A DNA stretch of 63,813 bases, filler included, from Hyphochytrium catenoides (taxonomy: Eukaryota; Protista; Hyphochytriomycota): NCBI GenBank assembly GCA_900088475.1. It is 10 parts of 10 records of this genome, joined end to end, with 100 filler letters (N's around TTAATTAATTAA, not from the genome) between each part and the next. Parts side by side here need not be neighbours in the genome. Positions count along the whole stretch, not along the records: positions 1 to 19,862 come from FLMG01000730.1; 9 more parts are not named here. One strand, 5' to 3'. The translations under genes and the position numbers were made by a program. Position 1 is the first letter of the stretch; each line of letters starts with the position of its first letter. Positions 1 to 19,862 of this stretch are shown here, one piece after another. Below the pieces are notes generated by a model. That model was given only the letters and a program-made list of their open reading frames with translations, was not told where the DNA came from and did no database searches.

Positions 1-355
1 GAGAGAGAGAGAGAGAGAGAGGTGTCGAGGGAGACAGACAGAGAAAGAAGGAGAGATGAGAGAAGGGCAGAGAGTCAGAGACAACGGGTCGAAGATAACA
101 CTGATCAAAGAGAAAGAGGAGAAGAGCGGCGACACACATCAGTCCGAGCACCAACAGCAGCTCCTCTAGAGATTGAAGACCTACGAGTCCAAATCTTCAC
201 AGCAGAGAATGGAAGAGCGAAAGAGTGACAGTGCCAGGTCTGGCATGAGAAGGAGGCGAACCAGGGAAAAAGAAGGAGAAGAGGAGATGCTCCCCAATCT
301 TTCCTGGGAGTAGAGAAGGTAAGCAAACAGCTCAGCGGCAACAAACGCCCCTCAC

Positions 356-1075
356 CATGGAGCAGAAGCGTCCTAGATGATAGACCTTGGACTCTGTGGC
401 GCCAGCACCTGAATCCAGTAGTCTAAAAATCAAAGGGAAAGAGGAAGACTAAGTAAAAGGGAGAGAGAGAAAGAGAGAGAGAGAGGAAAGGATGAAAGGA
501 GAGACCAAGTCCGACAGAATAGATTAACGAGAGCTTCTTTGTGGGTAGAACGGAAGCCATGCAAACTGTGAGCCTTAGAGCGGAAGGAAGAAGGCTTACA
601 TTTGCAGCTTTGTTCTCCAGTCTTCTCCGTACATCTGCTCAGGTTCGTACGAGGGGCCACAGAAACGCACCTAAAGAGACGAAGGGAGAGAGAGAGATTG
701 AGACTGGAGATAAAGAGAGAGAGAAATAGTCGTTTACCGTGTGCGTGCAGGTATGATTCTGTCTATTGCACGCTGCGCATACACTTTCGCCGCATCCTCC
801 CTGAGACACTCTGTGCCCTGGATGCTTCTGTTTCGGGAAAGAGGACCATGAAGAGGTAAGGAAGGGAGGGGCTACCAATAGAATAGGGAGGCTAGGCTTA
901 GCCGGGGGAGGAGAGATACAGCGAAGAGGGAGAGAGTAAGTAGCACAAACAATGAGAGAGACTGGGACAGACTGCATGTTTTCAAAAGCAAGGATCGAGG
1001 CAAGGTCATGCAGACGAACAACCATTAGGCAAAAGAATAAAAAAGAGATAGGGAAACAAAGAAAGAAAGAGAGGT

Positions 1076-1139
<64 letters not shown>

Positions 1140-1619
1140 AGGGAGAGAGAGAGGAGGAGGAGACGAGGTGATGGTCCTACTTCACCTTCAGATCAGAGAA
1201 ATATTCCACATGCCACGCGCTGCTCCCTACGAGAGATTCCCGCCAGCAAACGAGCTTGTCTTCGACCTTTCGGTGATTGGCAGAGGTGAAAGTGTAAGGC
1301 GACAAACGCAGGAATGGATGCGTGGAAACGAAGAGATGTCGTCCTCGTCCTTACCAGCTTGATGGCCGTGCGGACCTCAGGGTGCTTGCCCTTCCTAACA
1401 TCCATGTAGTAACTATTATCTAGCTTTAAGATAGCGGGAGCAGTGCAGGCGAGAGAGAGAGTAGAAGAGAGAGAGAGACAGAGAGAAGGGCAACAGGTGA
1501 GGAAGAAGAATTGGGGTAATACGAAATCGAACGTGATCAATCAAATGACTCTTGCGTCCATAACGCCTCCCCCCTGCTACCGTCTCTCTCCATTTTCATG
1601 ACTATTGTCCCTCTCTCTC

Positions 1620-1655
<36 letters not shown>

Positions 1656-2672
1656 CTCTCTCACACACACTCTCTCTCACACTCTCACTCTTTGTCTCTC
1701 GCTAGCTATTCGGCACACACACGCACACCGGACACAGCTTTTGGATCCCTGGCCTGTCCCTTCTCGCCACTGGGTCATCGTCCTCTACTACTTCCTCTTC
1801 TCCCTCTTTCCTTTTTTGTTTACTCTTCTCTTCTAATGAACTGTCTACTCCCCCTTCTGTCGTACCAGTGCTCTGATGAGATACTGAAGGTAAAGGATGA
1901 AGGCGTTCCTCGGGTCTTTCTGAGCCTTCAAAGAGCGGAAGAGAAGGAGAGGATCTGTGTCATCCTCCACATCCGGATGCAGGCGTCGCGGGCGCTTAGA
2001 CCCGGCAGATCTTCTAGCTTTAGACCCAGAACCTAAGGGAGAGAGAACGAGAGAGGGAGAAAACCGACGAGAGGGCGCAAGAGAGAGAGACACACACATA
2101 TAAGAGCAGCAGATATATCACAATCCAAAGGCTCAGTGGTCTAAAGAAGAGAGGTGAAGAGAAGGATAAATGACTTTTGACGAGAGGGAAAAGAAGAGAG
2201 AGAAGAGAAAATGAAGAGGAAGAGAAGGAAAGGGACGGGGCAGAGCTGGACGAAGAGAGAGATGGCAGAAGAGAGAAGGTAGAAGAGAGAGAGTGAAAGA
2301 GCAAGAAAAACAATGGAGAGAGAGAGATGTTGAATTAGAAGTCAATGGGCTCGTCGGAGCTCTCAGGCCTACCACCCAGCATATCTTGTTTCTCTGAGCT
2401 CTTCTGCCTCTTCATGGCAGGTGCCACCACTGGAGTTTCTTGCCTGCTCTTCTCTTTAGCTCTACCACGTCTCTCTCTCTCTTTCTTTTCTCCTCTCTTG
2501 CCTCCATTTGCTTCCTCCTCTGAGGCCGAAGAGACGGCACTCTCTTCCACCTCATCGTCCGCCACGAGAAAATCTCTCATGCTGTCACTGTCAGAGGCCT
2601 CGTCCGCAGACCTGCGACGGAGGAGAAAGAGCCATGAGTAAAAGAATGGGACGGCAACAGAGAAAGAGAGAC

Positions 2673-2707
<35 letters not shown>

Positions 2708-3036
2708 AGAAGGAGAATGAGTAAATAGGGAGACAAGGTGGGTCGAGAACTGCGAAGGAAAGAGAGGAGCTTCTGCTTTGAGAAGGCTGTAGAGAGCGTC
2801 TTACCTTTTGTCAGCGTTAGCAATGAGAGCACCAGCGGATTTCCTAGACTCAGAACCTGAGTCAGCTGTCTGATCTTCCCCGTCTGCCTCTTCCCTCCTT
2901 TTCTCATAATAGTAAACCCTTTTTTCGCCTCTCCCCTTCCTTTCTATCACCAGCGGCAGCTGTCTTCAGCCAACACTCTACTCTCTCTCTTTCTCGCTTT
3001 CTTTGTGTGTGTGTGCCATTCTCGCATGTCTGGCTC

Positions 3037-3068
<32 letters not shown>

Positions 3069-4022
3069 NNNNNNNNNNNNNNNNNNNNNNNNNNNNNNNN
3101 NNNNNNNNNNNNNNNNNNNNNNNNNNNNNNNNNNGTCCTTCCTGCTGCTAGCCGCTGGCATGTACCACTCTCTTTCTTCCTTCCCCCCTTCTCTCCCTGT
3201 CTCGCTCTTGCTCTCTCTCTCTCTCTCTCTCGTCACTTCCCCTTAGTTCCTCCTCCCCCTAGGTAGTGAATATGCTTACCTTGCTGTCACTATTGGTGGG
3301 CTACTCCTCCTCTTCTGTCTCTTTCCCTCTTTCCTCTCTCTCTCTTGCTTTCTCTTTTTCAAAGATGAAGACGATTCTTCAAAGTCCTCACTGTCTGCCG
3401 TCTCTTCCAAAGAGGAGGAGAAAGAGAAAGAAGGATCATCCAGTCTGCCGGTCTTCTCTTTCGCCTTGAACTGTTGATGCTTTGTCGGCTTTGAATGGGC
3501 AGATCGCGTGATACGCGGCTTGGAAAGAGAGAGACGATGGGTTTGTTCTCTCTCATCTCTCTCTCTCTCCTTGTTGGCGGGTGTCTCTCCTTCTCTCGTG
3601 CCTTGGAACACCACTTCTGCGTCAGAATCTGAATCCAAGCCATCCAGAGCAGGCGCTGGGCGAGAGAGAGACTTGCGAAGAGAGAAAGACCTTGCTGCAC
3701 TCTTCTCTCCTTGTCCTTTCTCTTTCTCTAATGGTCTAGGCACCGGAGTACTCAGACTCCCATTCTCTTTGTTTAAAAGAAGCACCGCTTCTTCATCACT
3801 GTCTGTCTCTTCTGCATCGGAGAGAATCCTCTTCTTCTTGGTGGAAGAGGCTGGGGTGGCGGTGGAAGACGCGGGAGAGAGGTTCTCCTTCTCTTTGCCT
3901 TTGTTTTTCCCTGGAGTTCGCGTGGTTTCTTCAGTGTCTAGGCTATTGGGTCTCTCCTTGGAGCTATCTCTCTCTTCCTCGTCATCATCATCCACAGTGT
4001 AAAGAGTACTCTTCCTTGTCAT
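356..4022 (-). CDS. DUF4211/CCDC82-like protein; multi-exon, acidic low-complexity N-terminus, 3' end not resolved
   Basis: The C-terminal exons splice in phase: ...NAFILYLQYLIRAL|LDNSYY...AIKL|VEDKLVCWRESLVGSSAW...DLK|KHP...CAACNRQNHTCTHT|VRFCGPSYE...|...YHLGRFCSM. The SSxW, CxACxR, FxGxxY and GRFC motifs resemble DUF4211. The N-terminal exon is ORF 3276..4022. The linkage across 2800-3280 is uncertain because of an N gap. Confidence 0.7.
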
Positions 4023-4395
4023 TGTTCGTGGAGGTCTCTTCTGGCCTCTGTCCTCTCTCTCTCTCTACCTGCCGTCTCTCGTCTGTGCACGTTGGCTGTC
4101 TGTCTTCTCTCCTAGTCTCTTTCTCCTCGGCTGTCCTGGTTCTTTCTTCTCGCGCTAAGGAGTAATATCTCTCCGCAGTCTCAGAAGTGCAACGCGACAA
4201 TCTGAAGAATCTCTCTTCTCATCTCATCGGCTTGCTCAGTCTTGCCGTCTCTGTTGCTTACACCACAGGCTTCTCTCTTCCTCTCTCCCCACTGCAGGGC
4301 GGTCTCTCACTTCTTTCTCTCTCTCTCTTTCTCTCTCTCTCACGCTCTGTCTCTTCAGAACCCAAGTCTCATCCTAAGAACAGCAGTAACAAAAT

Positions 4396-4538
4396 GCGCG
4401 GGAACTAGCCCGCGAAAATTTCAAGTACTGAATCCTTCAATTTCTCCAAAAATTACAATCCGCTAAACTCTTTATCTTCCACCAAGGAAACCTTTCGCAA
4501 CAATGGAAGTGAAGGTTTCGCGCCAGGTGGTTTCGCGC
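4396..4538. promoter_or_regulatory. Cluster of E2F-like sites upstream of the DUF4211 gene
   Basis: TTTCGCGC at 4516-4523 and 4531-4538 matches TTTSSCGC. Near-matches on the reverse strand: TTCCCGCGC at 4396-4404 and TTTTCGCGGG at 4409-4418. Confidence 0.4.
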
Positions 4539-4854
4539 GCTTTGAAGACTTTTCGTTGTTGGTCCTCTCTCTTTCTCTCTCTCTCTCTCTTTCCTCTCTC
4601 TCTCTCTCTCTCTCGTTCTCTCTCTCTCTCTTTCTCTCTCTCTGTCTCTCCCTTGCCCACTCTTCCGCACTAGCCGCCGCTCTCTGCGGAACGCTGTCTC
4701 CTCCGCTGGCTTCCGCTATGTCTCTGAGTTCTGTCTCTTCTTCTCTCCTCACTCTACTTTTACCTCTCTGAGCGCAGAGTTCTAGGACCACAGAGCGTCA
4801 AACAGTTACTCTCTGCCCAGGCGCTTTATATTGCTAGAGCACTTCTCTCTCGGA

Positions 4855-5416
4855 CTATTCTCTCCGCCCGTGGAGCGTCCTACTCTTTCTCCTCTGCGAA
4901 GCCTCTTCTCTCCCTCAGCCACTGATACACTTTCTGCTTGCATTTTTCAAGACCTGGTGAGGAGATCAGAGGGCGGGCAATAGAAAGTCATAGTAGAGTG
5001 AGGTTAGACGGTGGGCGAAGGCAACGCAACGACAAACCTTTCTAGAGAGAGAGAGAGAGACAAAAGAGAGAGAGAGAGAGAGAGAGAAAGAAAACGACTA
5101 AGCAGAAGCAGAGGAGTAAGAACAACACGAAAGGGACTGGACGAGAACGCAACCAGAGAAGAAGGCCCCCTACGTACTTGTCGCTTCCATGCTGTCCAGC
5201 CAGGGAGAATACATTAGCTCATCTGCTGACTGGCGCATCTCAGGCTATCAGCGACGATGAGGAGAGAGCGAGAGAGAGCGAGAGAAGAGAGAGAAGGGAG
5301 AGAAAAGCGGAGAGAAAGGTTAGCCCCAGAATTGTTCCTAATCTCAAGCACACCAGCTCTCACAACCTCGCTACTCTTCTGTGTATACCCCTTATCCTAG
5401 CTCATATTTCTCTCTT

Positions 5417-5447
<31 letters not shown>

Positions 5448-6155
5448 TTTCAACCCTTTCTCCTTCCCTGCTTCTGCTGTCATATGTTCCTCCCGTGGAT
5501 ATCTTTCGTCTCCCGCTGTCAGAAAGCGTCTCCGTACCTTCTTCTGCAGACAGTTCTCAATAAACCCCTCGAAGTCTTCGCTGAACTCTCCTTTGATCGG
5601 ACACAGCCAGTCAATAACGGAAAGCACTAGAAGTAGCAACAGTTGTTGCCGCAGACCACTATGGTAGAGAGAAAGACCGACAGAGAAAGAGAGAGACAGA
5701 GGAAGGGGAGAGAGAAAAGGAAGGGGAGGGGAACGGGCAGAAGTAGGAGCAGATAGAGTGAGGACAAGAGAGAGAGAGGCGAGAGGGAGAGAGAGAGAGG
5801 GAGTGCAGCTCTCCTACCTTTGGGAAGGCGGGGTGGGTCGCCTTCAACCACCGTTTGAATAAACTGGGACAAAGGGACCAAGCGAAAGGAGAGAAAGAGA
5901 GAGAAAGGGGGCGCAGCCCAGTGGCGAGATTAGTGGAAAGACAGAGACAAGACGAGAAAGAAAAGTGAAGAAAGAAAGAGACCGAACCAATTATGTGTAA
6001 CCTCTGTCTCTTCTCCTTTGGCGCTGTCTTACCTCAATTCTGATCTGTAGGTCTTTGTATGGACTCCGGCCGGTTGCGCACTCCACAAGAACGAGTCCAA
6101 AGCTCCAGATATCAGACGCAAAGCTGGACACATGATGGTGAGGTACGCAAGGACA

Positions 6156-6195
<40 letters not shown>

Positions 6196-7641
6196 ACACG
6201 CGCGAGACAGAGAGAGAGAATGGAATTAAGAGAGAGAGAGCGAGGGAGAGAGAGAGACGGAGAGAGAGAAAAGAGAAAGACAGCGTGGAAACAGACCTAA
6301 GAATGACGAAGAGAGACTGAGGGAGAAGAATTGGTAGAAAGCCAGAGGAAGCGACAGAGGAGGAAGGACAGAAAATGACGCACTTATACTTCTCGTTTCG
6401 TAATCTCTCCGGAGACATGTACTGGAAAGTACCGACAAAGGTCTTGGCCATAGCTGCAAGGATAGGAGGGGAATGTCGGAAAGAGAAAAAGGTAAAGAGC
6501 AAAAGAGACAGCGAGAGAGAGAGGGAGAGAGAAAGCGCAGATAGAGAGAGAGAATAAAGAGACGTTAACCAAAAGTGGAAAGTGTCCGTACTCCACAGTC
6601 GATGAAGTGAGGGAGACAGGGGCTAACCTGAGTCACCGTCCAGTTGTCTTGCCAGGCCAAAGTCACTCAGTTTGACTAGCCCTGTGTTTGTCAGAAGGAT
6701 ATTCTGTGGCTTGATATCCTGGAGAGCGGAAGAAAAGAGGTGAAAGGAGTTCATGGTTTGCACAGCTAGGAAGAGAGAACAGATATAATGGGAGAGGGCG
6801 AAATAAAGCGAAAGACGATTGTGGAGCACAGGAGACACTCGGATAACCAGAGCACAGGTGGAGTGCGCTTGGAGAAGGGAGCCATAAGGTGAGGAGAGGG
6901 CCACAGCGCAGGAGCAGCAGAGAGAAGAAAGAAAGAGTAGGAGAGAGAGAGAGAGACAGCACGAGAGAGACAAGGCGTGCGGAGAGGCAAGAAAAGAGAG
7001 ACAAAGAGAAGAGAGACAGAGAGGCGCACGATAGAAAAGGTGAAGCAATGTAGACAAAACTCAAAGGACAAGGAGACTGAGGCAAGGAAAGGAGAGGACA
7101 GAGCTTAAAAAGGGAAGTAGAACAGGAACCAGATCCATGGCCTTACCCGATGGAACTGATTCAAGCTCTGGAGGTAGTTCAGGCCGCTAAGCACCTGGAA
7201 GGCAATCGCCGCTATAGTGGGCTCAGGGATGGATGGACCGTACTGCCAGGGTCCAGACACCAACAGCGAGAGAGAATGGCATTTTCGCCAGCGTTATGAC
7301 AGTGCAAAGGAAGAGGAAGGTCTATGGGAGATAGAACAGAACATAGAAAGAGTGATAGACGGAGAGGGAAAGGTGATAGGAAGAGACACGAACGCGGGAC
7401 GCCACAGAGAGAGAGACAAAGAGATAGAGGCCAAAGCGATAAATCGGAGAGGACGAGATATCTTAGATCTCACCTTGGCGAGCACTCTGTCGAGTGAGCC
7501 CATATCGCAAAATTCTAAACATACATTCACACTGATCTCGCTGAGGAAAGCCCCAAGAAACTGCACGACACTATGAAGGAGAGAGAGAGAGCGAAAGAGA
7601 ACGAGAGACACACAGAGAGAGGAAGAGAGAGAAAACGAGAG

Positions 7642-7679
<38 letters not shown>

Positions 7680-9411
7680 GAGGAAATGTGAGAGCGTGAG
7701 TCAGACTGCTAAAAAGAAAGCGAGAAGAAGCCGTTAGCCAATGAGGAAGAAATAAACGTCCGGCTGGCTAGTTGGCAGAGAGAAAGAGAATAAAAGCGCA
7801 TGGAGAGAAAGACAGACAGAGGCAAAGGCGGCAGACTCCTTGGAGCCTCACTTTGGACAAGAGGCGTTATATAGAGCCTTGATCTCTCTTAGCACCTGGT
7901 CCCGCTGTCCCTTCTCATAGATGTTAATGACCTGGTCTCGAAGAAAGCGAGTCGGTGGAAGAAAGAAGCAGCAGCAAAGCAGAAACGGAAGGATAGAGAC
8001 CGCTTTAGGAGGTGCTACAGAGAGGGAAACGTGTATGGTCCACAACTTGGATCTTATCAGGGACAGGGAACAGGGACAGGGAAAAAGATATTCGACGGCA
8101 CGTAAGTTTTAGGGAAGAGAAGCTTCGATTGAGATAGAAGCCCTGAGAGAGAAAAGCAAAGAAAGAGATTAGAGGTATTGAAAGAGATGGAGCGAGAGCG
8201 CGAGAGAGGTATTGTGAGGAAGAGAGAGAGAGGGCAACGAGCGAGAGATTAGAGAGAGAGAGAGAGCTTATTTTGGGGACGATGTGACCTTGACGGCTAT
8301 GACAGTGTTCGACGGAAGATGAATCATCTTCCGAACCTGGCCACTGCTGCCCCTCCCAATGACTTCCACAAGCTCAAGATCTTGCTCCTTTATCTCCTAT
8401 ACAGTCTCAGTTAATAGAAGTGTCCCAAGCTGCACTTTGTAAACCAGACTTTGTAGACGACTGCGGTCAAATCAATTTCCTTTGGCTTCCTTGCCCCACG
8501 GTCTTCCTTTTCTTTCTCCATCTGTCTCCAAAAGCATCCGCACCAATATTCTCAACCTCCTTTCACTCTCCATTATCACCATGCTCTCTCTGGCTTGTAG
8601 CTTATTCAGGCTCTTCCCTCCTTTCTTCCATTTCTCTCTTTCTTGTCAAGAGCTTAGCTTCCTCGCTTGTCCTTCTCTAAATCTGTCTCAAACTTTGATC
8701 CTAGACTACTTCTCAAGCCACAAATTACCGCCAAGCTCTTCTTTCTTCCTGGTGTTGGACTCTTCTCTTCGATTGTCTCATCAATAAATAGCCCTTCTCT
8801 GTGCATCGTTGGTGGTTAAGGCGATCCAATCGGGTGAACAGTGAGTAACAGCATCTTCCGTGAGAAGGGATGCAAGGAGATTGGTATGCAGACCCGCCGC
8901 GCGAGGAGGAGGCTGTACGGCAAAGGAGACGGCGAGGAAAGAAAGAAGAGTGTAACAGAGAGAGAAAGAAAGAGAGCGAGGGAACGAAAGAAAGGAAGAG
9001 GCAGAGAGAGACAAACACAGAGAGAGAGAAAGAGGGGGCAGAGAGAGAGAAACTCAGAGAGAGATAATGGAGGCAGCAAAGAAAGGAACCAACCATGAGA
9101 GTGATTGAAGAGAGAGGACAGAGTAGGGAGATGGCCTGTATGGATAAGAGACAGTAAGAAGCAGAAGCAAAGTGGTAAGAAAGGGGCAGACGAGCCAATC
9201 TTCCATGAGAATTGAAATGTGAAGATGCTGGGAAGGATATGGAGATGGAAAACCCTTCTCTCTTGAACGTCTTGTCTCCGGCGCGGTAGGACATCATCAT
9301 CGCCTCCTCCTTTCCGTCATCCTCTTCTCCATCACTCTCCACCGCCAGAGGAGTCAGGGGCCTCCTTCGCGGAGAGGACGAAGCAGCCGCGGAACTCTTT
9401 TTCTCTGACAT
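4855..9411 (-). CDS. MAP kinase kinase (STE7/MEK family), about 13 exons; intron 1 is AT-AC
   Basis: The spliced model gives VIGRGSSGQV, IAVK, REIKAL, CLEFCDMGSLD, HR|DIKPQNILL, KLSDFG, AMAKTFVGTFQYMSPER, SDIWSFGLVLVECATG and FSEDFEGFIENCLQK. ATG at 9411; TAG at 4855-4857. Confidence 0.93.
8801..9240 (-). other. U12-type AT-AC intron in the MAP kinase kinase gene
   Basis: 5' splice site ATATCCTT at 9240; branch CCTTAAC at 8821-8815; 3' splice site CAC at 8803-8801. Removal gives in-frame GFSIS|REGLFIDE, which continues into the kinase exons. Confidence 0.85.
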
Positions 9412-10229
9412 TGATAGCCGTGCTCTTGAGGCTGACTGCACCAGCCCTACCAGGGTTATTGGCCTTATGTTTGCGGTATCTATCCTCTAATGATAAAGTA
9501 CAGTCTTGTCCGCTTCCATCTCTGTTCCTTCACTTATTGCTTCCGCGGAGCTGGGCAGTGCAATAGCAGAATGAGGAGGGAGCGTACCGCTTCCACTCTG
9601 TCTTGAACGCAGGAATATCGGGCAGGATGACCCAGGTATCTCGACTTCCAAGGTCAACTCTACCAGGCATGGGAGCTAGGAGAGAGAGCGCATCAAGGCA
9701 GTGCTATTGGGGATGATCAACTGGCCTAAGAGATTGCTCTGCTTGCCTCTATCGAGCATCATCCAGCCGCCCCGCTAAGAAAATTCTTCGCACAGAGACA
9801 CAGATGCACTGTCTAAGGCGCTGACGAAGCGGCAGCGGCCGGGCGGCGATGGAAAGGAAGCTTGAAGCTGCTGAAGATACACAAAGAATCAAACTCTATG
9901 ATTCCTTAAACAGTTATCACAACATTTAGTTTCTGTGGGAGATGATTATGACTTGCGTCCATACTTGACATTTTGGAACAATCGGGTTAAGGGTAATTGA
10001 CAAGAATAAGCTTATTTGACACCAAATACCTCGTGATTGTGAGGTCAAAGTCAAGAAAGGCGTCAATTATCTCCTAGATTATCACTTACACAGAAACCCC
10101 TTCACGAAAGGACATCGGAAAGATTACGTCAATAGAAAAAATATGAAACATTTTATTCCCCTAGAAATGTATTGTTTAATAGTGAAGAGATAGAAATGTT
10201 TCGCTTTGCCTTTTGTTTCGTTCATCGAA

Positions 10230-10468
10230 GGTCATTTCTTTGATGTCTTCGAAGAGTCAGTCAAGCTTTGGACGGTGGAATCAGCAGGTAAGACAGCACC
10301 TGTCATGGGAGAGAGAGAGAGAGAGAGAGAGAGTGAGAGGAGAGAGAGAGAGTGAGAGAGAGAGAGCGAGAGAAAGACAGAAGAGAGTGAGGGAGAGAAA
10401 GACAGAAGAGAGAAAGACAGAAGAGAGAGAGGGAGAGAGGAAAGAGAGAGAGACAGAGAGGGAGAGAG

Positions 10469-10502
<34 letters not shown>

Positions 10503-10822
10503 ACACCGAGAAGAGCAAGACAAAGAGGGTACCATAGATGGATGTATCATCCTTGCCATGACCTGGCTACTCTCAGGAGCTTGCAGCACAGCGCGCACAA
10601 TAGCAGGACAAGCAGCCGCAAGAAGTGGAGCCATGGCATAGAGATTATCGACAGAGAAGAGAGAGAATTGACACCGTCGTCTCCTTCATAGTCATTTACT
10701 GTCCAGCTTTGTTCCTTCTTTTCTGTGAGTAGCAATTCCCTCCGTAGGGATGTACGGTTAGTTGCACCTGGCGCTGTAAAAGAGTTCTCCTCGCGAATCT
10801 TTCTGCTATCCTGGGCTCCCAT
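10230..10822 (-). CDS. Possible small spliced gene, head-to-head with the ELMO gene; reading frame unresolved
   Basis: A GT...CAG intron candidate at about 10562-10300 has a sense-strand (CT)n tract like the other introns. ATG at 10822 (MGAQDS...). No recognisable domain. Confidence 0.3.
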
Positions 10823-10941
10823 CCTCTTTCCCTCTCTCTCTCTCTCTCCCTCTCTCTCTCTGTGCGTCTCTGTCTGTTCTCTCTCTCTCTTGCCGAGCTT
10901 TCTCCTCATTCTGTTGCTGAGGAACGATAGAGGTCTGAAAG

Positions 10942-13900
10942 ATGGGAAACGCAGAGAGCAGTCCCGGCGTGTACCCTGACCCTGCGCGGTATCCAAAGCT
11001 GATAGGGGAAGAAGAGACAGCAGAACCTTCTCCTCTCTCTTCTTCTTTCTCCTTCAGCAGCTGGTTTTCTTTCCTGGGCCTTGCAGGGGACACGGCCAGC
11101 CCTTACTCAGAGTTTGCCCGGCTGCCTGAGGACAGGGAGATGGTGAAGCTACTGATCCTACAGAAGAAGCTGTACACTCGGCTTATAGAGAAAGAGGAGG
11201 TGAAAGGCTCTCTCCCTCTCCCTCCCTCTCTCTCCCTCTTTCTCTCTCTCCTTTTCCCTCCTTTTGCTTGTTCTATGGCTGCTCTCTTTACGTGTTCCCT
11301 TCCTTCACACTCCCTATCTGTCTGTCTCGGATATTTTGTCTTCCTACCGTTATAGCTCCCCTTCTCAGTCTCTTTCTCTCTTTCTCTGTCTCTTTCTCTG
11401 CCCCTGGGTCTTTTTTCAGACGAGAGCAAGTCTAGGCAAGCTGGCTCTCTCTTTTCCTTCTCCCTATTTCTCTCTGAGTTTCTTTGTCTTTCTTGGTCTT
11501 CTTTGGGATCTCTAACAGCTGTCTCTCCTCTTTACACTTTCCCTTCTGGGGCTCCCTCAGCATGTGGCGCTGTTACGGCGGCTTTGGAACAGCCTGACTA
11601 ACAGTTCTAAGGTAACCGCAGCTGTCTTTGCTTATCAGTCCTTCGTCACACTTTTGTCTTGTTGTTCCAATCTCTCTCTCTCTCTCTGTCTCTCTCTATT
11701 CTCTCTTTTTGTCGCGTTCTCTCTTCTGACTTTTGTCCCTACCCCACCCCACCCTCTCCCCCTCTCCCTCCCTCTCTGTCTTTTTGTTTGTCTGTCTCTG
11801 TATCTCTGTTTCTCTCTCTCTACTCTTTCTCTCTTTTCTCTCTCTCTCTCTCTGTCTGTGTCTGTGTCTGTTCCTCCCCCTTCACCCTACTCCATCCTCA
11901 CATCTATATCGTCTTCTTCCTCACAATATGTGCCTCACATTCTGCAATGCTTTCTTTTTTGGTATGTTCCGCAACTAACGTAGAGACTGTGACCTTCTTT
12001 CGTTTCTCAGCCGTTCCAGCGCTTTAGTCCTCTTTGGGAGGAGCTCGGCTTCAGCTCTTCCAATCCAGGTCCCGAGCTTCGGGGCGGTGGACAGGTAAAT
12101 AGGAGGAGAAGTGAAGGAAAGATGTTTCTTGTGGTCCCTCCTTTGATGGCTTTGTATCGGCAGGCTGTAGGGTCTACAGTCTCTTACGTACTCTCTCTCT
12201 CTCTCTCTCTTTCGATCTTCTCTCTTCCCCGTTCTCTCTCTCTATCTCTCTCTCTCTCTTCTTCCCTTGTTCTTCGTCTCAATCATTATGTCTCCTCTCA
12301 CGCCTCAAGCTGGGACTAGAATGCTTGGTTTACTTCTCTGAGCGCTATCCCGCGGAAGCACGGATGATGATCCGGCCTCAGCACTATCCCTGGGCCCTCA
12401 TGGCAGTGAAGATCACCAATGCCATTGCCCAGGTCTTCCACCTCAGAAATCCCGAGGGCAGAAGAGGTACAAGGCGTTCTCTCTCTCTGTCTCGGTCTCG
12501 CTCGGTCTCGCTCTCTGTCTCTCTCGCTTTGTCTCTCTCTCTCTCTGTCTCTCTCTCTCACTGCTCTGCTATTACAGACAAGAATCGGTTGCCAGAGTTC
12601 TCTTCCGCTCTCTCTCTCTTATTTCTCCCCCTCTGCTGTCTCTCGCCTTTTGTTCTTCAACCTTTGTCTCCATCTTCTTTTTTGTCTCTCTCCGTCTCTT
12701 CTGGCCCCTTCTCTCACTGTCTCTCTCTTCTATCTCTTTCTCTCTCTCTCTGCTCTCGGACACACCCACACCCACACGGACACCTCTATACTTCTGCAGC
12801 AGCGATATATCATCCCTTTCTTAAGCTGAGGCCACATTCTTTCTGCCCTTGCTTCTTTCTCCTTTCTCTTCTCTTAGCAATACCTGCTGCAAGCTTCTCC
12901 CCTAACGTTAGCTCTCTGTGTCCGTCGTCCTTGTCACTTCAGGACCCTTCCCCTGCACAAAGACTGTATACTGGCACGTTTTAGAAGATGAACTCGACTT
13001 CTTCAATCTCTTCTGCTTCTCTCTCTTCGTGATCGATGATATTTATATTGAGGCTTGCAGAAAGTCTAAGGTAACTCTTTTTCTTGGTACATTTTCATGT
13101 TTACTGTCTCTCCATGGAACCTTCCGCCGCTTTGTCTCTCTTAGAATGATCTCTGTCTCTCTGTCTCCCCCTTTTCTCTCTCCCTCTATGTCTTGCTCTC
13201 TCTCTCTCTCCTTGTGTCTCCCCACTTGCCTCTGGGTGTCTGTTGCTCTCCCTTCCTCTTTTGGTCTGTCGGCTCTTACTTCTTCTCTGCATCAAATAAA
13301 ACTATCATCCAGAACCTGAAGGCTACGTGGGCCCAGCACCCAGAGATGATAGCGGAGGTCAGTGCAGCCTCCGCCCTTTGTTTCTCTCGATTCTTCTCCT
13401 CCCTTTGCCTTCCCCAACCCCCAACCAATACCATCATCCCCTTCCTTTCTTTCTCTCTCTCTCTCTCTCTCTGTCACTTTCTCCCTATATGTTCGCACCC
13501 TCACTCTCTTGACTTCTTCTGACTTGAGATTTTCCCCGACACTGTTCTTCTTGCGGTCCGCCTTGTTCCTCTCCCTGTTCACTGATGTTTCCCAAAGCTC
13601 TATCATTCTGCTTAGTGCTAGATGGCCGCGCAATCTCTCTCCCTCTCTCTCTTTCTCTCTCTCTCTCCTAATTTTCCAATCTCACTCTCTCTCTCCTTTC
13701 TCTTTAGTTCGAAGGCCTCCTTCTCACACGCTGTACCATCTTTCTCTTTGTCTCTCTTAGTTTAGAGAAAAGCTACTGTCCGCTCTGAGTCAGGGACCAC
13801 AGAAAATTTCAGACCTGCAATACATCCGAACCGCAGGTAGATTGCTCTCATATCGGCTGTACCCTTTGGATGAGTAATCCTCTGTCTCTCTCCCTCGTTC

Positions 13901-14608
13901 CTCCGATTCTTGGTCTCTCTTGCCCTCGAGTCCTCTCCCTCCAGCACCCTTCTCTCTCGCTCTCGCTCTGTCTCTCGCTCTCTCTCATTCGCTCTCGGCT
14001 CTCTCTAGGCGTGGCTCGCCCTGTCTTTCTCTATCCTCTCTCTCTATCTCCTCTGCTTTCGCAATCTCTTATTCTTATATAAAGAGATTTTCTCTTTATG
14101 GTCCTTTCCTGTTCCCACTCCTTCCTGCTTTATTCGCTTTCTGCTATCCTCAAAGGCAAGCTGCCTCTGATCCCAAATCAACCTCGCCTGTCGCTACTTC
14201 TATTGACGCATTCTCTCCAATGTTCTGTCGCACCAAAGGCGCTCTACCTTCAAATCTATGGAGCCGGGAGGGCACTGTCCCGATGGGTGTCTGTGAGTAC
14301 TCGAGAAAGGGCTGGAAGGCGGTGGGTAAGAAGCAAGAAAGAGGAATGAAGAGGCTGCAGTCCACGTGAGTACCTTCTTTCTTGCGAGTGCTTATGATGC
14401 TCTCTTTCTCTCTTCGATCCCTTCTCGTGACCCTAGCTCTTCTCTTTCTTCACTGGTGTTGACTCGCTCGTCAGTTCCTAGGGTTAGCTCACCCGTGGAT
14501 TGTTTCTCTTGCAGACCTTGACATTTCCCCTATCGGTCGGTCTTCTTTCTTTCTTTCTCTCTCTCTGTATGTATTCTAACGCTTTATTTATTTATTTCTT
14601 ACTTTCTT

Positions 14609-14643
<35 letters not shown>

Positions 14644-16745
14644 CCTCCTTTTGCCCTAAACACTTCTTTCTCCCTCTTTCACCGCGTAGTGCTTGGGCAT
14701 CGGCGCCTTTCTCGCAAGAGGACAATGAACAGTCGCTACTCTCCGAATGCAAGAAAGCCATTCCATCTCTCTCCTCCTGGAAGAGCCAGCCCGAGGAGAG
14801 GGAGAGAGAGACGGAAGGGTCCCTCTTCGAGAATAGTAACAGAATGGCTGATCCCTTCGGGCAAACAGAGGACGAAAGAAGGACCGGGCCTATGCCAGCG
14901 ATATCTGTTGAAGAGGGTAAGAGGGAAGGGGAAAGAGAAGGGGAGAGAGAGAGAGCGGCTGAGAACACATTGGAAGAAGAAGGAGAGGATGAGGAAGAAG
15001 ATAGGACCGAAGGGCGGAGCAGTACTGAGAGTCTAGGGCACGGGGCGAGAGCGGATCTCTTCGCTGGTCTCACGACGAAGAACTATCAAGAGCTTGTGTT
15101 CGATGGTACGTCCTGATCAGGACTTCAGCCACTGGGGACGGGGGAAGGGTTCCTCGCTTTCCTACCTATCTTGTACTCTTCACGTCTCTCTCGCCCCCTC
15201 GCTCTGTGTTGTTTGGGTGTGACACTGTCTCCCTCTCAAGTCCACTGTCACGCTCTTCCTCTGTCTCTCGATGCGCTCAGCGCTTCTTTCTTCATTGTGA
15301 TCTTCTCCATCGCGTCTTGTGTCTTCTCTTTCTCGCCTCTCTCTGTCTCTCTTTTCACCCCAGTCACGTTCTACTTCTCTTCCCTTACCTCCATGCTCTA
15401 AAACTATCATTCTTTCCCTCCTCAGCTCCAACCCCTAACCCTCGAGAGGAGTTAAGCTCTGAAGAGTCTGTCCCCCCGTCTCCCTCTCTCTCGACACCCA
15501 CCAGTAGTATGGAGTCTCCGCTCTTTCAGGTGAGATTGTGCCTCTCCCTTATAAAGCGCAATCTATTCTCCACTAGCTCTATGTCTTTCTTACCTGCAGC
15601 TCATGTCTCTCTCTCTCTCTCTCTCTCTCTGTCTGTCTCTCTCTCTTCCTTCGCTTTTATAAGTTTCTGTCCTTTCTGCTCCGTTTTTGAGCCTATTCCT
15701 CTTGCCTGCCTTTCGTGTTCCTCTCTCTGTTTGCCTTGGGGTTGAGTTGCTGCCTACATGCTCTGCAAGACTGTCATCTGCCTTACAATCTCCGGTTAGG
15801 ACTTTTTGGATATAACTCGAGGAGAGGCGGAGCTCTCCAAACAGAAGGAAGTGGAAGAGGCTCTAGCGATAGAGCGAGGAAGGAGGCTAGATCTGCAGCG
15901 AAAAGTGGAGACAGCTGTTGAGATGGTTAGCCGCACCTTTGCTGCTTTAGCTCATGTCCTTTTCCTCTACCTCTTTTCCTTCCTCCGCTGCCGTCCTCGT
16001 CCTCTCTCTCCCTCGTTATCTCTCTCGCTCCTCGCTTCTCCGTGTCTGAGTGCAATACCTACTTTCTACTGGGCATGCGTGCGAGCCTTTGCGCCTCTTC
16101 CTGGCCAGGCTACTGATGGTTTATCCTCATTCCCTAGTCTTCTCCTCGTCTGTCGTCTCACCCTCGGATCCTATCTTTGTGCTGATAGTGGAAGGCAAGG
16201 CACACAACCGTGCGAAGCCAACTGGCTCATCTATCGGAGATACTTTGGCCTGGCGCGAGGTGGAAGGATGTTGAGGAGAAAGAGCTTGTTGAGCCCGAAA
16301 GGGTACGTGTGGCCTTGAACGAGGCACACATTCTCCTTCCTTTGTTCCCACTTCATAACTTACGTCTCAATTTTCTGGCCCTTGGGCTCTTTATCAGAAT
16401 GGTCTATTTTGACTTAGTAGCCCCGGTTAATCTTTGCATCTTGCTTTCTATTGCAGCTATTCATCTGCTATTCATGGTGCTATTGCGTGACTGCTAACGC
16501 TCTGTAAGAGCCTGAGGTCTCTGTAACGCTTATTTCTTTTCTCTATCAGCCAATTTCCTTATTATCTCCTTTACCATGCTCCTATCTAGGTCAAGAGAGT
16601 ATTTAGAAAGGCGATGGTGGTCGTTCACCCAGATCGTTGCGTGACGCTGACAGAGGAGCAGCAACTGCTTGCACTTGCCATCCATACGGAGCTCGACCGC
16701 ACCTGGGACATCTTTGATCGCATGGAATATAGCTTCGGCTTATAA
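10942..16745 (+). CDS. ELMO/CED-12 (ELMOD-type) domain protein fused to a C-terminal auxilin-type J domain, 13 exons
   Basis: All exon phases are compatible. N-terminus MGNAES (myristoylation-like). ELMO motifs: LLRRLWNSL, WEELGFSSSNPGPELRGGGQ|LGLECLVYF and YPWALMAVKIT. The acidic linker has DPF and DLF. C-terminus: WKARH..VRSQLAHLSEILWPGARWKDV...|VKRVFRKAMVVVHPDR...WDIF. TAA at 16743-16745. Confidence 0.85.
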
Positions 16746-17235
16746 ATGTAATATGACCATGACGATATCGGTAACCTTGTGATTCCTTACCGTATGGAGA
16801 CGTATAGAGCCAGGAAGTGTGGGACTATCCAGAATGACTGAAAGCGGGGATCAAGAGATTGGCTAAATAGAAGACAAAGATAGACACTCTGGAAGTCTTT
16901 ATATTAACTCTAAGGATACATGGCCTGAGGCTGATACTCTGAGGCTACCGTGATAACCCTCATGTGTCGCATCAAACAACAACTACGGATCAAGGGGAAC
17001 AGAGGCTCTGCCCACACTCCATTCTCAGCCGTCAGTCACAGCGATGAGTAACCTAATAAACGGTAGACCTGACAAACAAAAAGTGGCTACTGCGCGCTGG
17101 CCTCTTTGCCCAAGAAATCCAATAACCAATCTCTGATTGAACTCAGTCTTCAGATAAAAAAGCCGGTAAATGCCTACATTGATCTGGCTGTCGTGGTATA
17201 ATTACCAATTGTAATCCCTCCTGTCCGTACAGCGG

Positions 17236-17307
17236 GCGGATGTCGTATAGAGGTTAGTACTTCACGTTGTGGCCGTGACAACCTGGGTTCGATTCCCAGC
17301 ATCCGCA
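17236..17307 (+). tRNA. tRNA-His(GTG)
   Basis: Acceptor stem GCGGATG/CATCCGC; anticodon arm TCACG-TTGTGGC-CGTGA; T arm CTGGG-TTCGATT-CCCAG; T7 Pol III terminator at 17311-17317. Confidence 0.95.
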
Positions 17308-19828
17308 AAATTTTTTTCTCCATCACCGTCATGAAGGTTTCGCGTGAAAGCTTCCATCACACGTATCTTGCCATTGAAAGGGCTTTACAGAGTAACAAAA
17401 AGAAAGATTTCCGCGAAAGCTTCAGAGCTGACTTTTTGGAGCTACCTGACCTCTCTAAACAACATGTGCTCTCATTCCGAATCCAGAAAGCTCTAGCAAT
17501 GCTGGAGCGGTAAATAATACTATTTGATCATGAATAGACTTTGCAAGAGATTTGCCCCCTTTTGCTCCATCCATTTTGGAAACAGTCTTCAGCTTGTGGG
17601 ATCCTTTCACGCTATATATACTGCTACGCTCTCCATCGATACAGGTAAGACCGTACTTATACAGGATCATTTCTATAGTACAGTCTCCTGTCTTGTTTAT
17701 TCTAAACAAGACAACTCTTCCAACCTTGATGATCGGCCCTGACTACTGCCATTGACGTGGGATGTGAGCCTCTGGCGATGCTTTGGCATCTGCTGCAGGC
17801 TGTTGATGAACGTCCCCTGCCCCATTCCAGGCAGGGTGAGTGGTAGTAGTGGTATGAGAGGTTCCCCCTTTCTCTCTTCTTTCTTTGTTCTCTATATTCT
17901 GTCCCTTCGTCCCTACCCTGTCCAGCCATCGCCGGACCGACTATCTACCACTCTCTCTCGTGACTATGACTTCACTTACCTCTCACACCTGTCCTGCTCT
18001 CTCATGTCGCAGTTCTATCTGTTAAACTCTCTGCTGCTGGCTCGGTCGCCTTTAATTAGCAGGACACTAGCCTTTCAACAATAAGGGGGAGCATTAGGGT
18101 TGCAGTGGCCATTATCTCCTGGTGCTGCTGCTGTTTGAACCTTCTCAAGAGAGTATCTATGCTTTCAGGTGCTTGACCAGCAAGGGACTGATATGACTCG
18201 CTTGGCAGCAGGCTGATGGTTGGCGCACGGGGAGCATGACAACCTCCTGGCACCGCAGGCAGGCTGATCCCTCCGTTTGCCAGCCCTATCTTGCAGGCTT
18301 TTTCTATGCAACTACTTCGGTCGTCGTTCTGCGTTCACTCAACTCATTGTTGTTGCTGTTCTCGGCCTTCTTCTTCTTCTTCCTTTGCCTTCAGCTTTTA
18401 TTGTCGTAGTAGCACCACTGATAAATGAAAGCCGCCGAGCGCTGCTAGCGCTTCATAGCATGGTGATGGTTAGGTAGAAGGATGATGATGTTCGTCGTTT
18501 CTGTGGGAGAGGAGGGCGGGAGGGGAGACGACGAGGGTGGTGGTGATTTACCAAGCTTCCCTCATCAGCATCAAAAGTAATGTAGATCTCTTTTCATCTC
18601 TACTTTTTTAGACTACTACAGCCAACGCAGCAGAAAGATGGCAATGTCTCCCCGCGAGTTGCCATTCCTTCCGCCTCTCTTTTTGAAAGCGGCCGCGCTC
18701 TTTCTTGCAAAAGGAAAAGAGCTGTGCTGCTGATGGTGCGAGTGACGATGAGATCATAACTCTGTAGAGCGCTAGCAGGACAATAATATAGAGGGCTGTT
18801 TGTTCCTGCTTCTCACTTATGATGCTACTCTTCTCATGATGATTTCCAGTCTTTTTTTCTCTCAAAAGACAAGCGCCCAAAGTCATCAAAGAGCTATGAG
18901 GCCCTCTCTGCGGCCTTCAAGAAAGAAGAGATCAACCTATTCCTTATTACCTCCTCCGTCGTCGTAAAGTAGCTGTTGCATCAAAAAGAATCTTCATCAT
19001 TATTGTCCATGTCGTCGAAGAAAGGAGAATATTCCTACATATCTCCCTTTACCCTCACTTACTCTCATCATTCATAAGCTCCCGCTTCCTTCGCAACAAA
19101 TAGTAAGCGCCAGATGCCACCACACCTCTAGTAGTGCTAATTGTTACAAAGGGACGATGGGCAAGAAGGGCAACCCTACCAAGGTTATTTATAGCTAGCC
19201 CTAATAATCATCAATTATTATTTTTCTCATGAGCGCTCATCATGCCACAGCTGTTGCTTGCCCTCCGCAGCATCTCAATAAGATGCCCAACATTCGTCCT
19301 CTCTACGCACCACCACCCTAGTCGTAATGCAGGGTCATCATCATCAATCCCATGCGGTCGTCGGCCAACAACAATAACTCCAATTGCTACCATCACCCAT
19401 ACCAGCAGCAACAAGCACCACGAACAGCGATAGCAGCAGCTAGACAGAATAATGAGGGTCAGCAGCAAGTGCTTGGATGTATATATTTATACGCCGCATC
19501 ATCATCAAATAAACAATAAAATGTCTGCTGCTCCAGCAAATGGCGGTGGGTGGTTGGTAGGTGACCGCCGCCGCAGCAGCAACAGGCAGGCAGCAGCGAT
19601 AGCTTCTTTGAATCCTGGATGATGGCGATGATGATGCTCTACTTAGTAGTAGTCCCGCAGCAAGCAATAGCAGCTAATAATATTTCTTCATAGGAAAAAA
19701 TATCTACAAAGTACAGAGTGGCCGTGAAGAGAAATTCTTAGGCTTGGCCACCGAAAATAATTTATTATAGTAATAAACTATACCAAAATTAACCCCATGG
19801 GAAGGGTTGAAAAGCGATGAAAAAGTTT

Positions 19829-19862
19829 TGCGGATGCTGGGAATCGAACCCAGGTTGTCACG
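19829..19862 (-). tRNA. 3' half of a second tRNA-His(GTG), truncated by the contig end
   Basis: The reverse complement, CGTGACAACCTGGGTTCGATTCCCAGCATCCGCA, is identical to the 3' half of the 17236 copy and is followed by a T run. Confidence 0.85.

Follow-up and report, generated by a model that had tools for sequence, protein, structure and literature searches.

One gene or two? An ELMOD-type ELMO domain and an auxilin-type J domain on the same strand in Hyphochytrium catenoides

How Arf-GTP hydrolysis, and with it the release of adaptors, is coordinated with the removal of the lattice by Hsc70 and auxilin is still debated for AP-1/clathrin carriers. ELMODs are GTPase-activating proteins (GAPs) of the Arf/Arl GTPases that act through a motif arginine, and J domains of the auxilin type bring Hsc70 to clathrin coats and activate it there. 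In the hyphochytriomycote Hyphochytrium catenoides (GenBank assembly GCA_900088475.1), an auxilin-type J domain lies approximately 2.5 kb downstream of an Arf-GAP-type ELMO domain, on the same strand of an intron-rich region, and the question that this locus raises is whether the two are parts of a single polypeptide. The window analysed is a stretch of 63,813 nucleotides made up of ten joined parts of this genome, and the locus occupies positions 10942-16745 within the first part (1-19862, from record FLMG01000730.1). On balance we favour one fused gene, predicted to encode a protein of about 613-639 residues that begins with MGNAES and continues with an ELMOD-type ELMO domain carrying the arginine R127, a linker and an auxilin/GAK-type J domain with its HPD motif. 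A single transcript seems the better reading because both flanks of exon 8, through which the two halves would be connected, have the CT-rich composition of introns.

Rebuilt from the raw sequence, the locus yields 13 exons on the plus strand with GT-AG at every border, consistent phases and an open reading frame (ORF) of 639 residues, and there is neither an N run nor a break in composition between 10942 and 16745. The 13-exon ORF proposed in an earlier, sequence-only reading of the window is reproduced in each of these respects, but that its two halves form one ORF was not confirmed. The features of the model are as follows.

10725-10921 (+): putative intron of the 5' untranslated region (5'UTR), CT-rich, read in the sequence as GTGAGT...AG, with a pyrimidine fraction of 0.85 at 10800-10899
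10942-11199 (+): exon 1, with the start codon and MGNAES; an in-frame stop stands immediately upstream at 10936-10938
11561-11611 (+): exon 2, GT-AG, phase 0
12011-12094 (+): exon 3, with the ELMO GAP motif; matches PF04727 at profile positions 42-66, E 4e-4
12080-12082 (+): Arg127 codon CGG, the 24th codon of exon 3, where ELMODs have their catalytic arginine
12310-12466 (+): exon 4, the ELMO core; matches PF04727 at profile positions 68-119, E 2.8e-8
12943-13070 (+): exon 5, presumed to encode the ELMO domain's C-terminal half, placed by frame and splice sites; alone without a Pfam match
13313-13357 (+): exon 6, GT-AG, phase-consistent
13761-13836 (+): exon 7, donor CAG|GTAGAT, position weight matrix (PWM) score 5.2
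14161-14365 (+): exon 8, donor CAC|GTGAGT, the weak link of the model
14690-15105 (+): exon 9, acidic disordered linker, acceptor PWM score 9.8; codon usage favours the model frame
14844 (+): in-frame ATG within exon 9, a possible independent start (MADPFG...), with A at -3 and G at +4
14850-14858 (+): DPF, in exon 9
15054-15062 (+): DLF, in exon 9
15426-15529 (+): exon 10, Ser/Pro-rich linker, GT-AG, phase-consistent
15800-15925 (+): exon 11, charged helical segment preceding the J domain, weakly similar to a piece at the 5' end of a metagenomic contig described below (L001)
16189-16302 (+): exon 12, coding for the helix and loop on the N-terminal side of the auxilin-type J domain, with PDB matches and an exon of the same length (114 nucleotides) in the contig
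16590-16745 (+): exon 13, J-domain helices with HPD and then the stop codon, with a PDB match to 1nz6; the contig exon is also 156 nucleotides long
16626-16634 (+): HPD, residues 601-603, in exon 13

The collinear matches of exons 3 and 4 to the Pfam family ELMO_CED12 (PF04727) identify a genuine ELMO domain of the ELMOD type at the position given by the sequence-only reading. Domain scans were run exon by exon and their scores thus apply to single exons rather than to the whole domain or the spliced protein; exon 4 alone reaches 34.5 bits, above the family cut-off of 23.3. Exon 3 encodes the motif W-x3-G-F-S-x3-P-x-P-E-L-R-G-x-G, in which the arginine is residue 127. The GAP motif that East and co-workers are said to have defined for ELMODs in 2012 reads WX3G(F/W)QX3PXTD(F/L)RGXGX3LX2L and includes the catalytic arginine. 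Set against this consensus, the sequence has S for Q, P for T and E for D, and it keeps W, G, F, P, L, R, G, G, L and L.

At the opposite end of the locus, structural matches identify a genuine auxilin/GAK-type J domain with its HPD motif. Exon 13 finds its best PDB matches in the J-domain chains of bovine auxilin (1nz6, 1xi5 and 2qwo), aligning with residues 53-94 of 1nz6 at E 2.9e-4. Exon 12 matches residues 17-52 of the same chain (E 0.23-0.26), ranked below a match to residues 23-53 of the Arabidopsis structure 3ag7 (E 0.041), which we take to be the J domain of JAC1. The auxilin matches of the two exons adjoin exactly at residues 52|53 of 1nz6, and these matches place the domain in the auxilin/GAK group, with the additional N-terminal helix as part of it. 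This auxilin-specific helix and loop are present in exon 12, whose matches are weak (E 0.04-0.3) but collinear and which is conserved in the contig. The match to Pfam DnaJ is marginal (E 0.24); marginal scores of this kind are usual for the auxilin subtype.

The linker that would separate the two domains is poor in classical motifs: it contains one DPF, one DLF and one LFQDF, and a motif search of it turned up none of the clathrin-box, FxDxF, NPF and W-box types. Motifs of the DPF and DLF type are ligands of adaptor appendages and of clathrin. For all of these parts the sequence-only reading has held up: the MGxxxS start (the protein begins with MGNAES, which is of the N-myristoylation type), the ELMOD-type ELMO domain, the replacement of GFQ by GFS and of TD by PE beside a retained arginine, the acidic linker with DPF and DLF, and the auxilin-type J domain with HPD were all recovered, and the Arg codon, DPF, DLF and HPD lie exactly where it had placed them.

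The J half also has a relative elsewhere. An exhaustive HMMER search of 1.84 billion representative proteins with the product of exon 13 returned one true relative, a 46-residue fragment (P0002) with 49% identity and, like exon 13, SFGL at its end; the other three matches proved to be repeat artefacts. The fragment is encoded by a eukaryotic metagenome contig (L001; ENA ERZ19033097, scaffold_128191) of 1068 bp and 25% G+C, which covers the J end only and is too short to show the upstream region. The contig contains an exon-12-like piece of 114 nucleotides and an exon-13-like piece of 156 nucleotides, together with introns of 61 and 49 nucleotides and a TGA stop. Since the exon lengths, intron positions and phases are identical to those found here, exons 12-13 represent a conserved, functional gene structure. 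A search of a word-indexed protein set with the ELMO exon found no relative (candidate lengths 159-506 residues), an alignment of the J exons against the same set gave nothing new beyond the fragment, and metagenome contigs of the Joint Genome Institute (JGI) scanned with the J alignment and the ELMO exon held no relatives. The lineage seems to be essentially unsampled.

That the two halves form one polypeptide would depend wholly on exon 8. To bridge the phase-1 end of exon 7 and the phase 2 that exon 9 calls for, any exon between them must measure 1 mod 3 in length, and several observations weigh against the one proposed. In the gap 13836-14690, 47 of the 559 AG..GT pairs yield an open in-frame link, which makes phase consistency across this interval weak evidence. 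When splice sites are scored with a PWM built from the other ten introns of the gene, the acceptor at 14161 is the weakest site of the model (-2.1), whereas that at 14156, which is out of phase and opens a frame that stops at 14349, scores 3.9. Exon 8 has neither a Pfam domain nor a homologue. Exon 7 left unspliced would end at the TAA at 13875-13877 and give a 279-residue protein of ELMOD size. No relative covering both halves was found by HMMER, in the word-indexed proteins or in the JGI metagenome contigs. Codon usage shows no preference for the frame of exon 8; short exons give this test too little power, with several of the true ones failing it once stops are ignored, and it was counted neither way.

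Other ways of crossing the interval were also tried. A direct join of exon 7 to exon 9 is in frame only via poor donors or via acceptors inside exon 9, and splicing between the strong sites 13836 and 14690 breaks the frame and meets a stop at 15034-15036; both were rejected. The interval also holds an ATG ORF of 83 codons (14098-14349, + strand) that overlaps exon 8 in the frame set by the 14156 acceptor; on a separate J transcript beginning upstream of this ORF, it would serve as an upstream ORF.

What argues for a continuous gene is the composition of the interval. The introns of the gene have pyrimidine fractions of 0.65-0.79 and its exons of 0.33-0.62. The flanks of exon 8, from 13837 to 14160 or 14238 and from 14366 to 14689, stand at 0.75 and 0.76 and have GT and AG borders, and exon-like composition is confined to about 14240-14369. 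The 3' flank (16746-17200) shows no such CT-richness. CT-rich blocks do occur near the starts of the divergent genes, at 10725-10921 (+) and approximately 10301-10532 (-). Both are bounded by GT..AG and probably represent 5'UTR introns. Because these other CT-rich blocks are also so bounded, CT-richness at this locus would mark introns and not intergenic DNA, and extreme CT-richness of the sense strand appears to be a mark of introns in this genome. Furthermore, the donor of exon 7 (5.2) falls inside the leave-one-out range of the other donors (3.7-9.4), and frame 2, the only frame open over the whole exon-like block, reaches the GTGAGT donor and continues into the J domain. This frame has in-phase acceptors at both 14161 and 14239, the latter scoring better (3.6). 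The 14156 acceptor, singled out in the sequence-only reading as a route to two transcripts, does lead to the stop at 14349 and scores about as well as the in-phase acceptor at 14239. Given a fusion, exon 8 is more likely to be 14239-14365 than 14161-14365, and the predicted protein would then have 613 residues.

The claim of a single protein is thereby favoured by composition but hangs on the weakest exon of the model, and the serious alternative, a substantial possibility although not the one we prefer, is that two neighbouring genes on the same strand have been joined by mistake, an ELMOD-type gene (exons 1-7) and a gene for a small auxilin-like J protein. The former would end at the TAA at 13875-13877, or at 14349 via the 14156 acceptor, and the latter would start at ATG 14221 or ATG 14844 and take in exons 9-13. 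In such an arrangement both products would have ordinary sizes, 279 residues for the ELMOD and approximately 250-350 for the J protein (253 from ATG 14844, whose A at -3 and G at +4 also speak for a separate start and hence against fusion). The fusion, for its part, has to use the model's poorest splice sites, many other joins would also keep the frame, and exon 8 brings no coding signal of its own. The auxilin-like proteins reported in SAR (stramenopiles, alveolates and Rhizaria) moreover all carry DIX and not ELMO (PMC12077222, PMC13753751). Two genes would, however, leave only some 340-500 nucleotides (343 from the stop at 13877 to ATG 14221, or 495 from the stop at 14349 to ATG 14844) as room for a 3'UTR, a promoter and a 5'UTR. 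The spacer is CT-rich like the introns of the gene, bounded by GT..AG and unlike the 3' flank, and a good donor sits right at the end of exon 7. The second gene would also encode a J domain devoid of a targeting module, and to our knowledge every characterised auxilin relative has one, whether PTEN-like, kinase, TPR/UBA or DIX. The point also draws on PMC13753751. If the halves do separate, the locus becomes an ELMOD beside a small auxilin-like gene, which would be ordinary.

A different and unlikely reading accepts one transcript and holds that its ELMO domain is a non-catalytic pseudo-GAP, which would recruit the J domain to membranes bearing Arf/Arl-GTP much as the PTEN-like domain does in auxilin. 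The deviation from the ELMOD consensus at three positions of the GAP motif (GFQ to GFS, TD to PE) speaks for it and makes GAP activity uncertain, a point that also tells against the full form of the fusion proposal. On the other hand, the arginine, its flanking glycines and the hydrophobic positions are kept, and exon 4 passes the Pfam cut-off by itself. Very improbable, finally, is an assembly artefact or a decaying locus, in which unrelated DNA has been joined between the halves or one half is a pseudogene. The assembly is indeed fragmentary and has an N gap at 3069-3134, but the locus itself is free of N runs and composition breaks, 13 of its 13 exons are open, and both HPD and the structure of the J exons are conserved in the metagenomic contig.

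The neighbourhood of the locus contains further genes. Upstream and divergent from it lies a multi-exon protein kinase gene of MAP2K (MEK/STE7)-like type (approximately 5400-9410, - strand), recognisable by the motifs DIKPQNILL, KLSDFGLA..DGDS.MAKTFVGT and YMSPERL and by three exon pieces that match Pfam Pkinase collinearly (profile 2-33, 108-151 and 171-212). The assembly gap at 3069-3134 falls amid Ser/Asp/Glu-rich low-complexity ORFs on the minus strand (2335-2907 and 3276-4022), neither of which has a Pfam match. Downstream, a transfer RNA gene, tRNA-His (GTG), is found at 17236-17307 (+), approximately 490 nucleotides past the stop codon (ARAGORN; Rfam 61 bits), followed by a full-length U3 small nucleolar RNA (snoRNA) gene at 17647-17862 (+; Rfam RF00012, 113 bits, model positions 1-219). 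Because these two genes lie downstream, the 3'UTR should be shorter than 490 nucleotides. The tRNA-His gene's 3' half recurs, inverted and with its T-rich trailer, at 19820-19862 (-), with 42 of 43 bases equal to 17274-17316, and this second copy is cut by the edge of the part.

If the favoured single gene is real, its product could act as follows. The lipid anchor and the ELMO domain would bring the protein to membranes that carry GTP-bound Arf or Arl, where the ELMO domain might stimulate GTP hydrolysis or merely bind the GTPase. The linker, predicted to be acidic, disordered and some 250-280 residues long, might touch adaptor appendages or clathrin through its DPF, DLF and LFxDF-type short motifs, and the J domain would then trigger the removal of the clathrin lattice by Hsc70. 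One polypeptide would in this way couple the release of adaptors with the disassembly of the lattice. A protein of this kind might even define a fourth class of ELMO proteins, in which a myristoylated ELMOD-type GAP and an auxilin J domain make up a single-chain uncoating factor and a Rosetta-stone fusion, a proposal that we advance tentatively and consider somewhat doubtful as a whole. Were it true, the presence of an Arf-family GAP and an auxilin J domain in one protein would amount to direct genetic evidence for a coupling of the two steps, and would also provide a simple construct with which to test the coupling.

How does the predicted protein compare with known systems? Like the ELMOD family (human ELMOD1-3 and its eukaryote-wide members), it has a single ELMO domain (PF04727) approximately 100 residues from the N-terminus and the motif W-x3-G-F-x-x3-P-x-x-x-L-R-G-x-G with its arginine, and exons 1-7 alone would encode a protein of typical ELMOD size. 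It differs in the Q to S and TD to PE changes within the motif, in its myristoylation-type N-terminus and, if the model holds, in a C-terminal extension of approximately 370 residues that ends in a J domain, which is unreported for ELMODs in the literature searched. With auxilin, GAK, Swa2 and the plant auxilin-like proteins (JAC1) it shares a J domain at the extreme C-terminus, whose HPD lies approximately 36 residues short of the end, the auxilin-specific helix that precedes it and has conserved Trp residues, and an upstream disordered region with DPF and DLF. In contrast to that group, it has no PTEN-like, kinase, UBA or TPR module, the N-terminal module being in this case the putative ELMO domain, and it contains only one DPF, one DLF and no canonical clathrin box.

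No protein combining ELMO with an auxilin-type or other J domain is described in the literature searched (literature only, not domain-architecture databases), which agrees with the impression of the sequence-only reading that the architecture was an unfamiliar one. ELMO domains have been stated to occur only in the ELMO, ELMOD and SAR-specific ARAMIS classes (PMC12077222). The last of these belongs to the SAR ‘Musketeer’ family, in which ARAMIS combines a DIX-like domain with ELMO, DARTAGNAN a DIX-like domain with an auxilin-like J domain, and PORTHOS a DIX-like domain with a NAK kinase (PMC12077222). ARAMIS resembles the predicted protein in joining ELMO to another trafficking module via a disordered linker and has been found in the same complex as a J-domain protein, but its DIX domain is N-terminal, its ELMO domain C-terminal and it lacks a J domain (PMC12077222), whereas at this locus ELMO is the N-terminal domain and DIX is missing. 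DARTAGNAN, which occurs in stramenopiles and apicomplexans and is represented in Toxoplasma by TgDDP, is a protein of the trans-Golgi network in that organism, where clathrin and Hsps are recovered in its pull-down and where it is essential to the budding of daughter cells (PMC12077222, PMC13753751). The disordered linker, charged helix and C-terminal auxilin-like J domain are alike in both, and DARTAGNAN has the same NIR..LL..W...W.....VKK.YR.A...VHPD pattern as exons 11-13 (File S1, PMC12077222), but an ELMO domain would stand here where DIX would be. DIX (PF00778) matched no open frame of 13789-15033 and none of exons 1-11, and its core motif was absent from all six frames of the window. 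The idea that the J half is a DDP orthologue with its DIX domain hidden in the gap was therefore rejected, and for want of DIX in any frame the locus falls in neither Musketeer class.

The Musketeers nevertheless make a direct union of ELMO and J biologically plausible, because in oomycetes ELMO and auxilin-like J proteins are already physically linked through DIX: a pull-down of oomycete ATHOS includes PLTG_07730, which is an ELMO protein, and DARTAGNAN also co-purifies with ATHOS (PMC12077222). A fusion, if true, would in turn help to explain this recently described family, where DIX domains assemble ELMO, auxilin-like J and NAK-kinase modules, and, in the Rosetta-stone sense, would imply that the ELMO protein ARAMIS and the J proteins DARTAGNAN/TgDDP, DIX-joined in other SAR, serve the same vesicle. 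The Musketeer proteins of SAR are thus the closest precedent for this locus and, if the fusion is real, H. catenoides would have joined ELMO and J directly rather than through the polymerisation of DIX.

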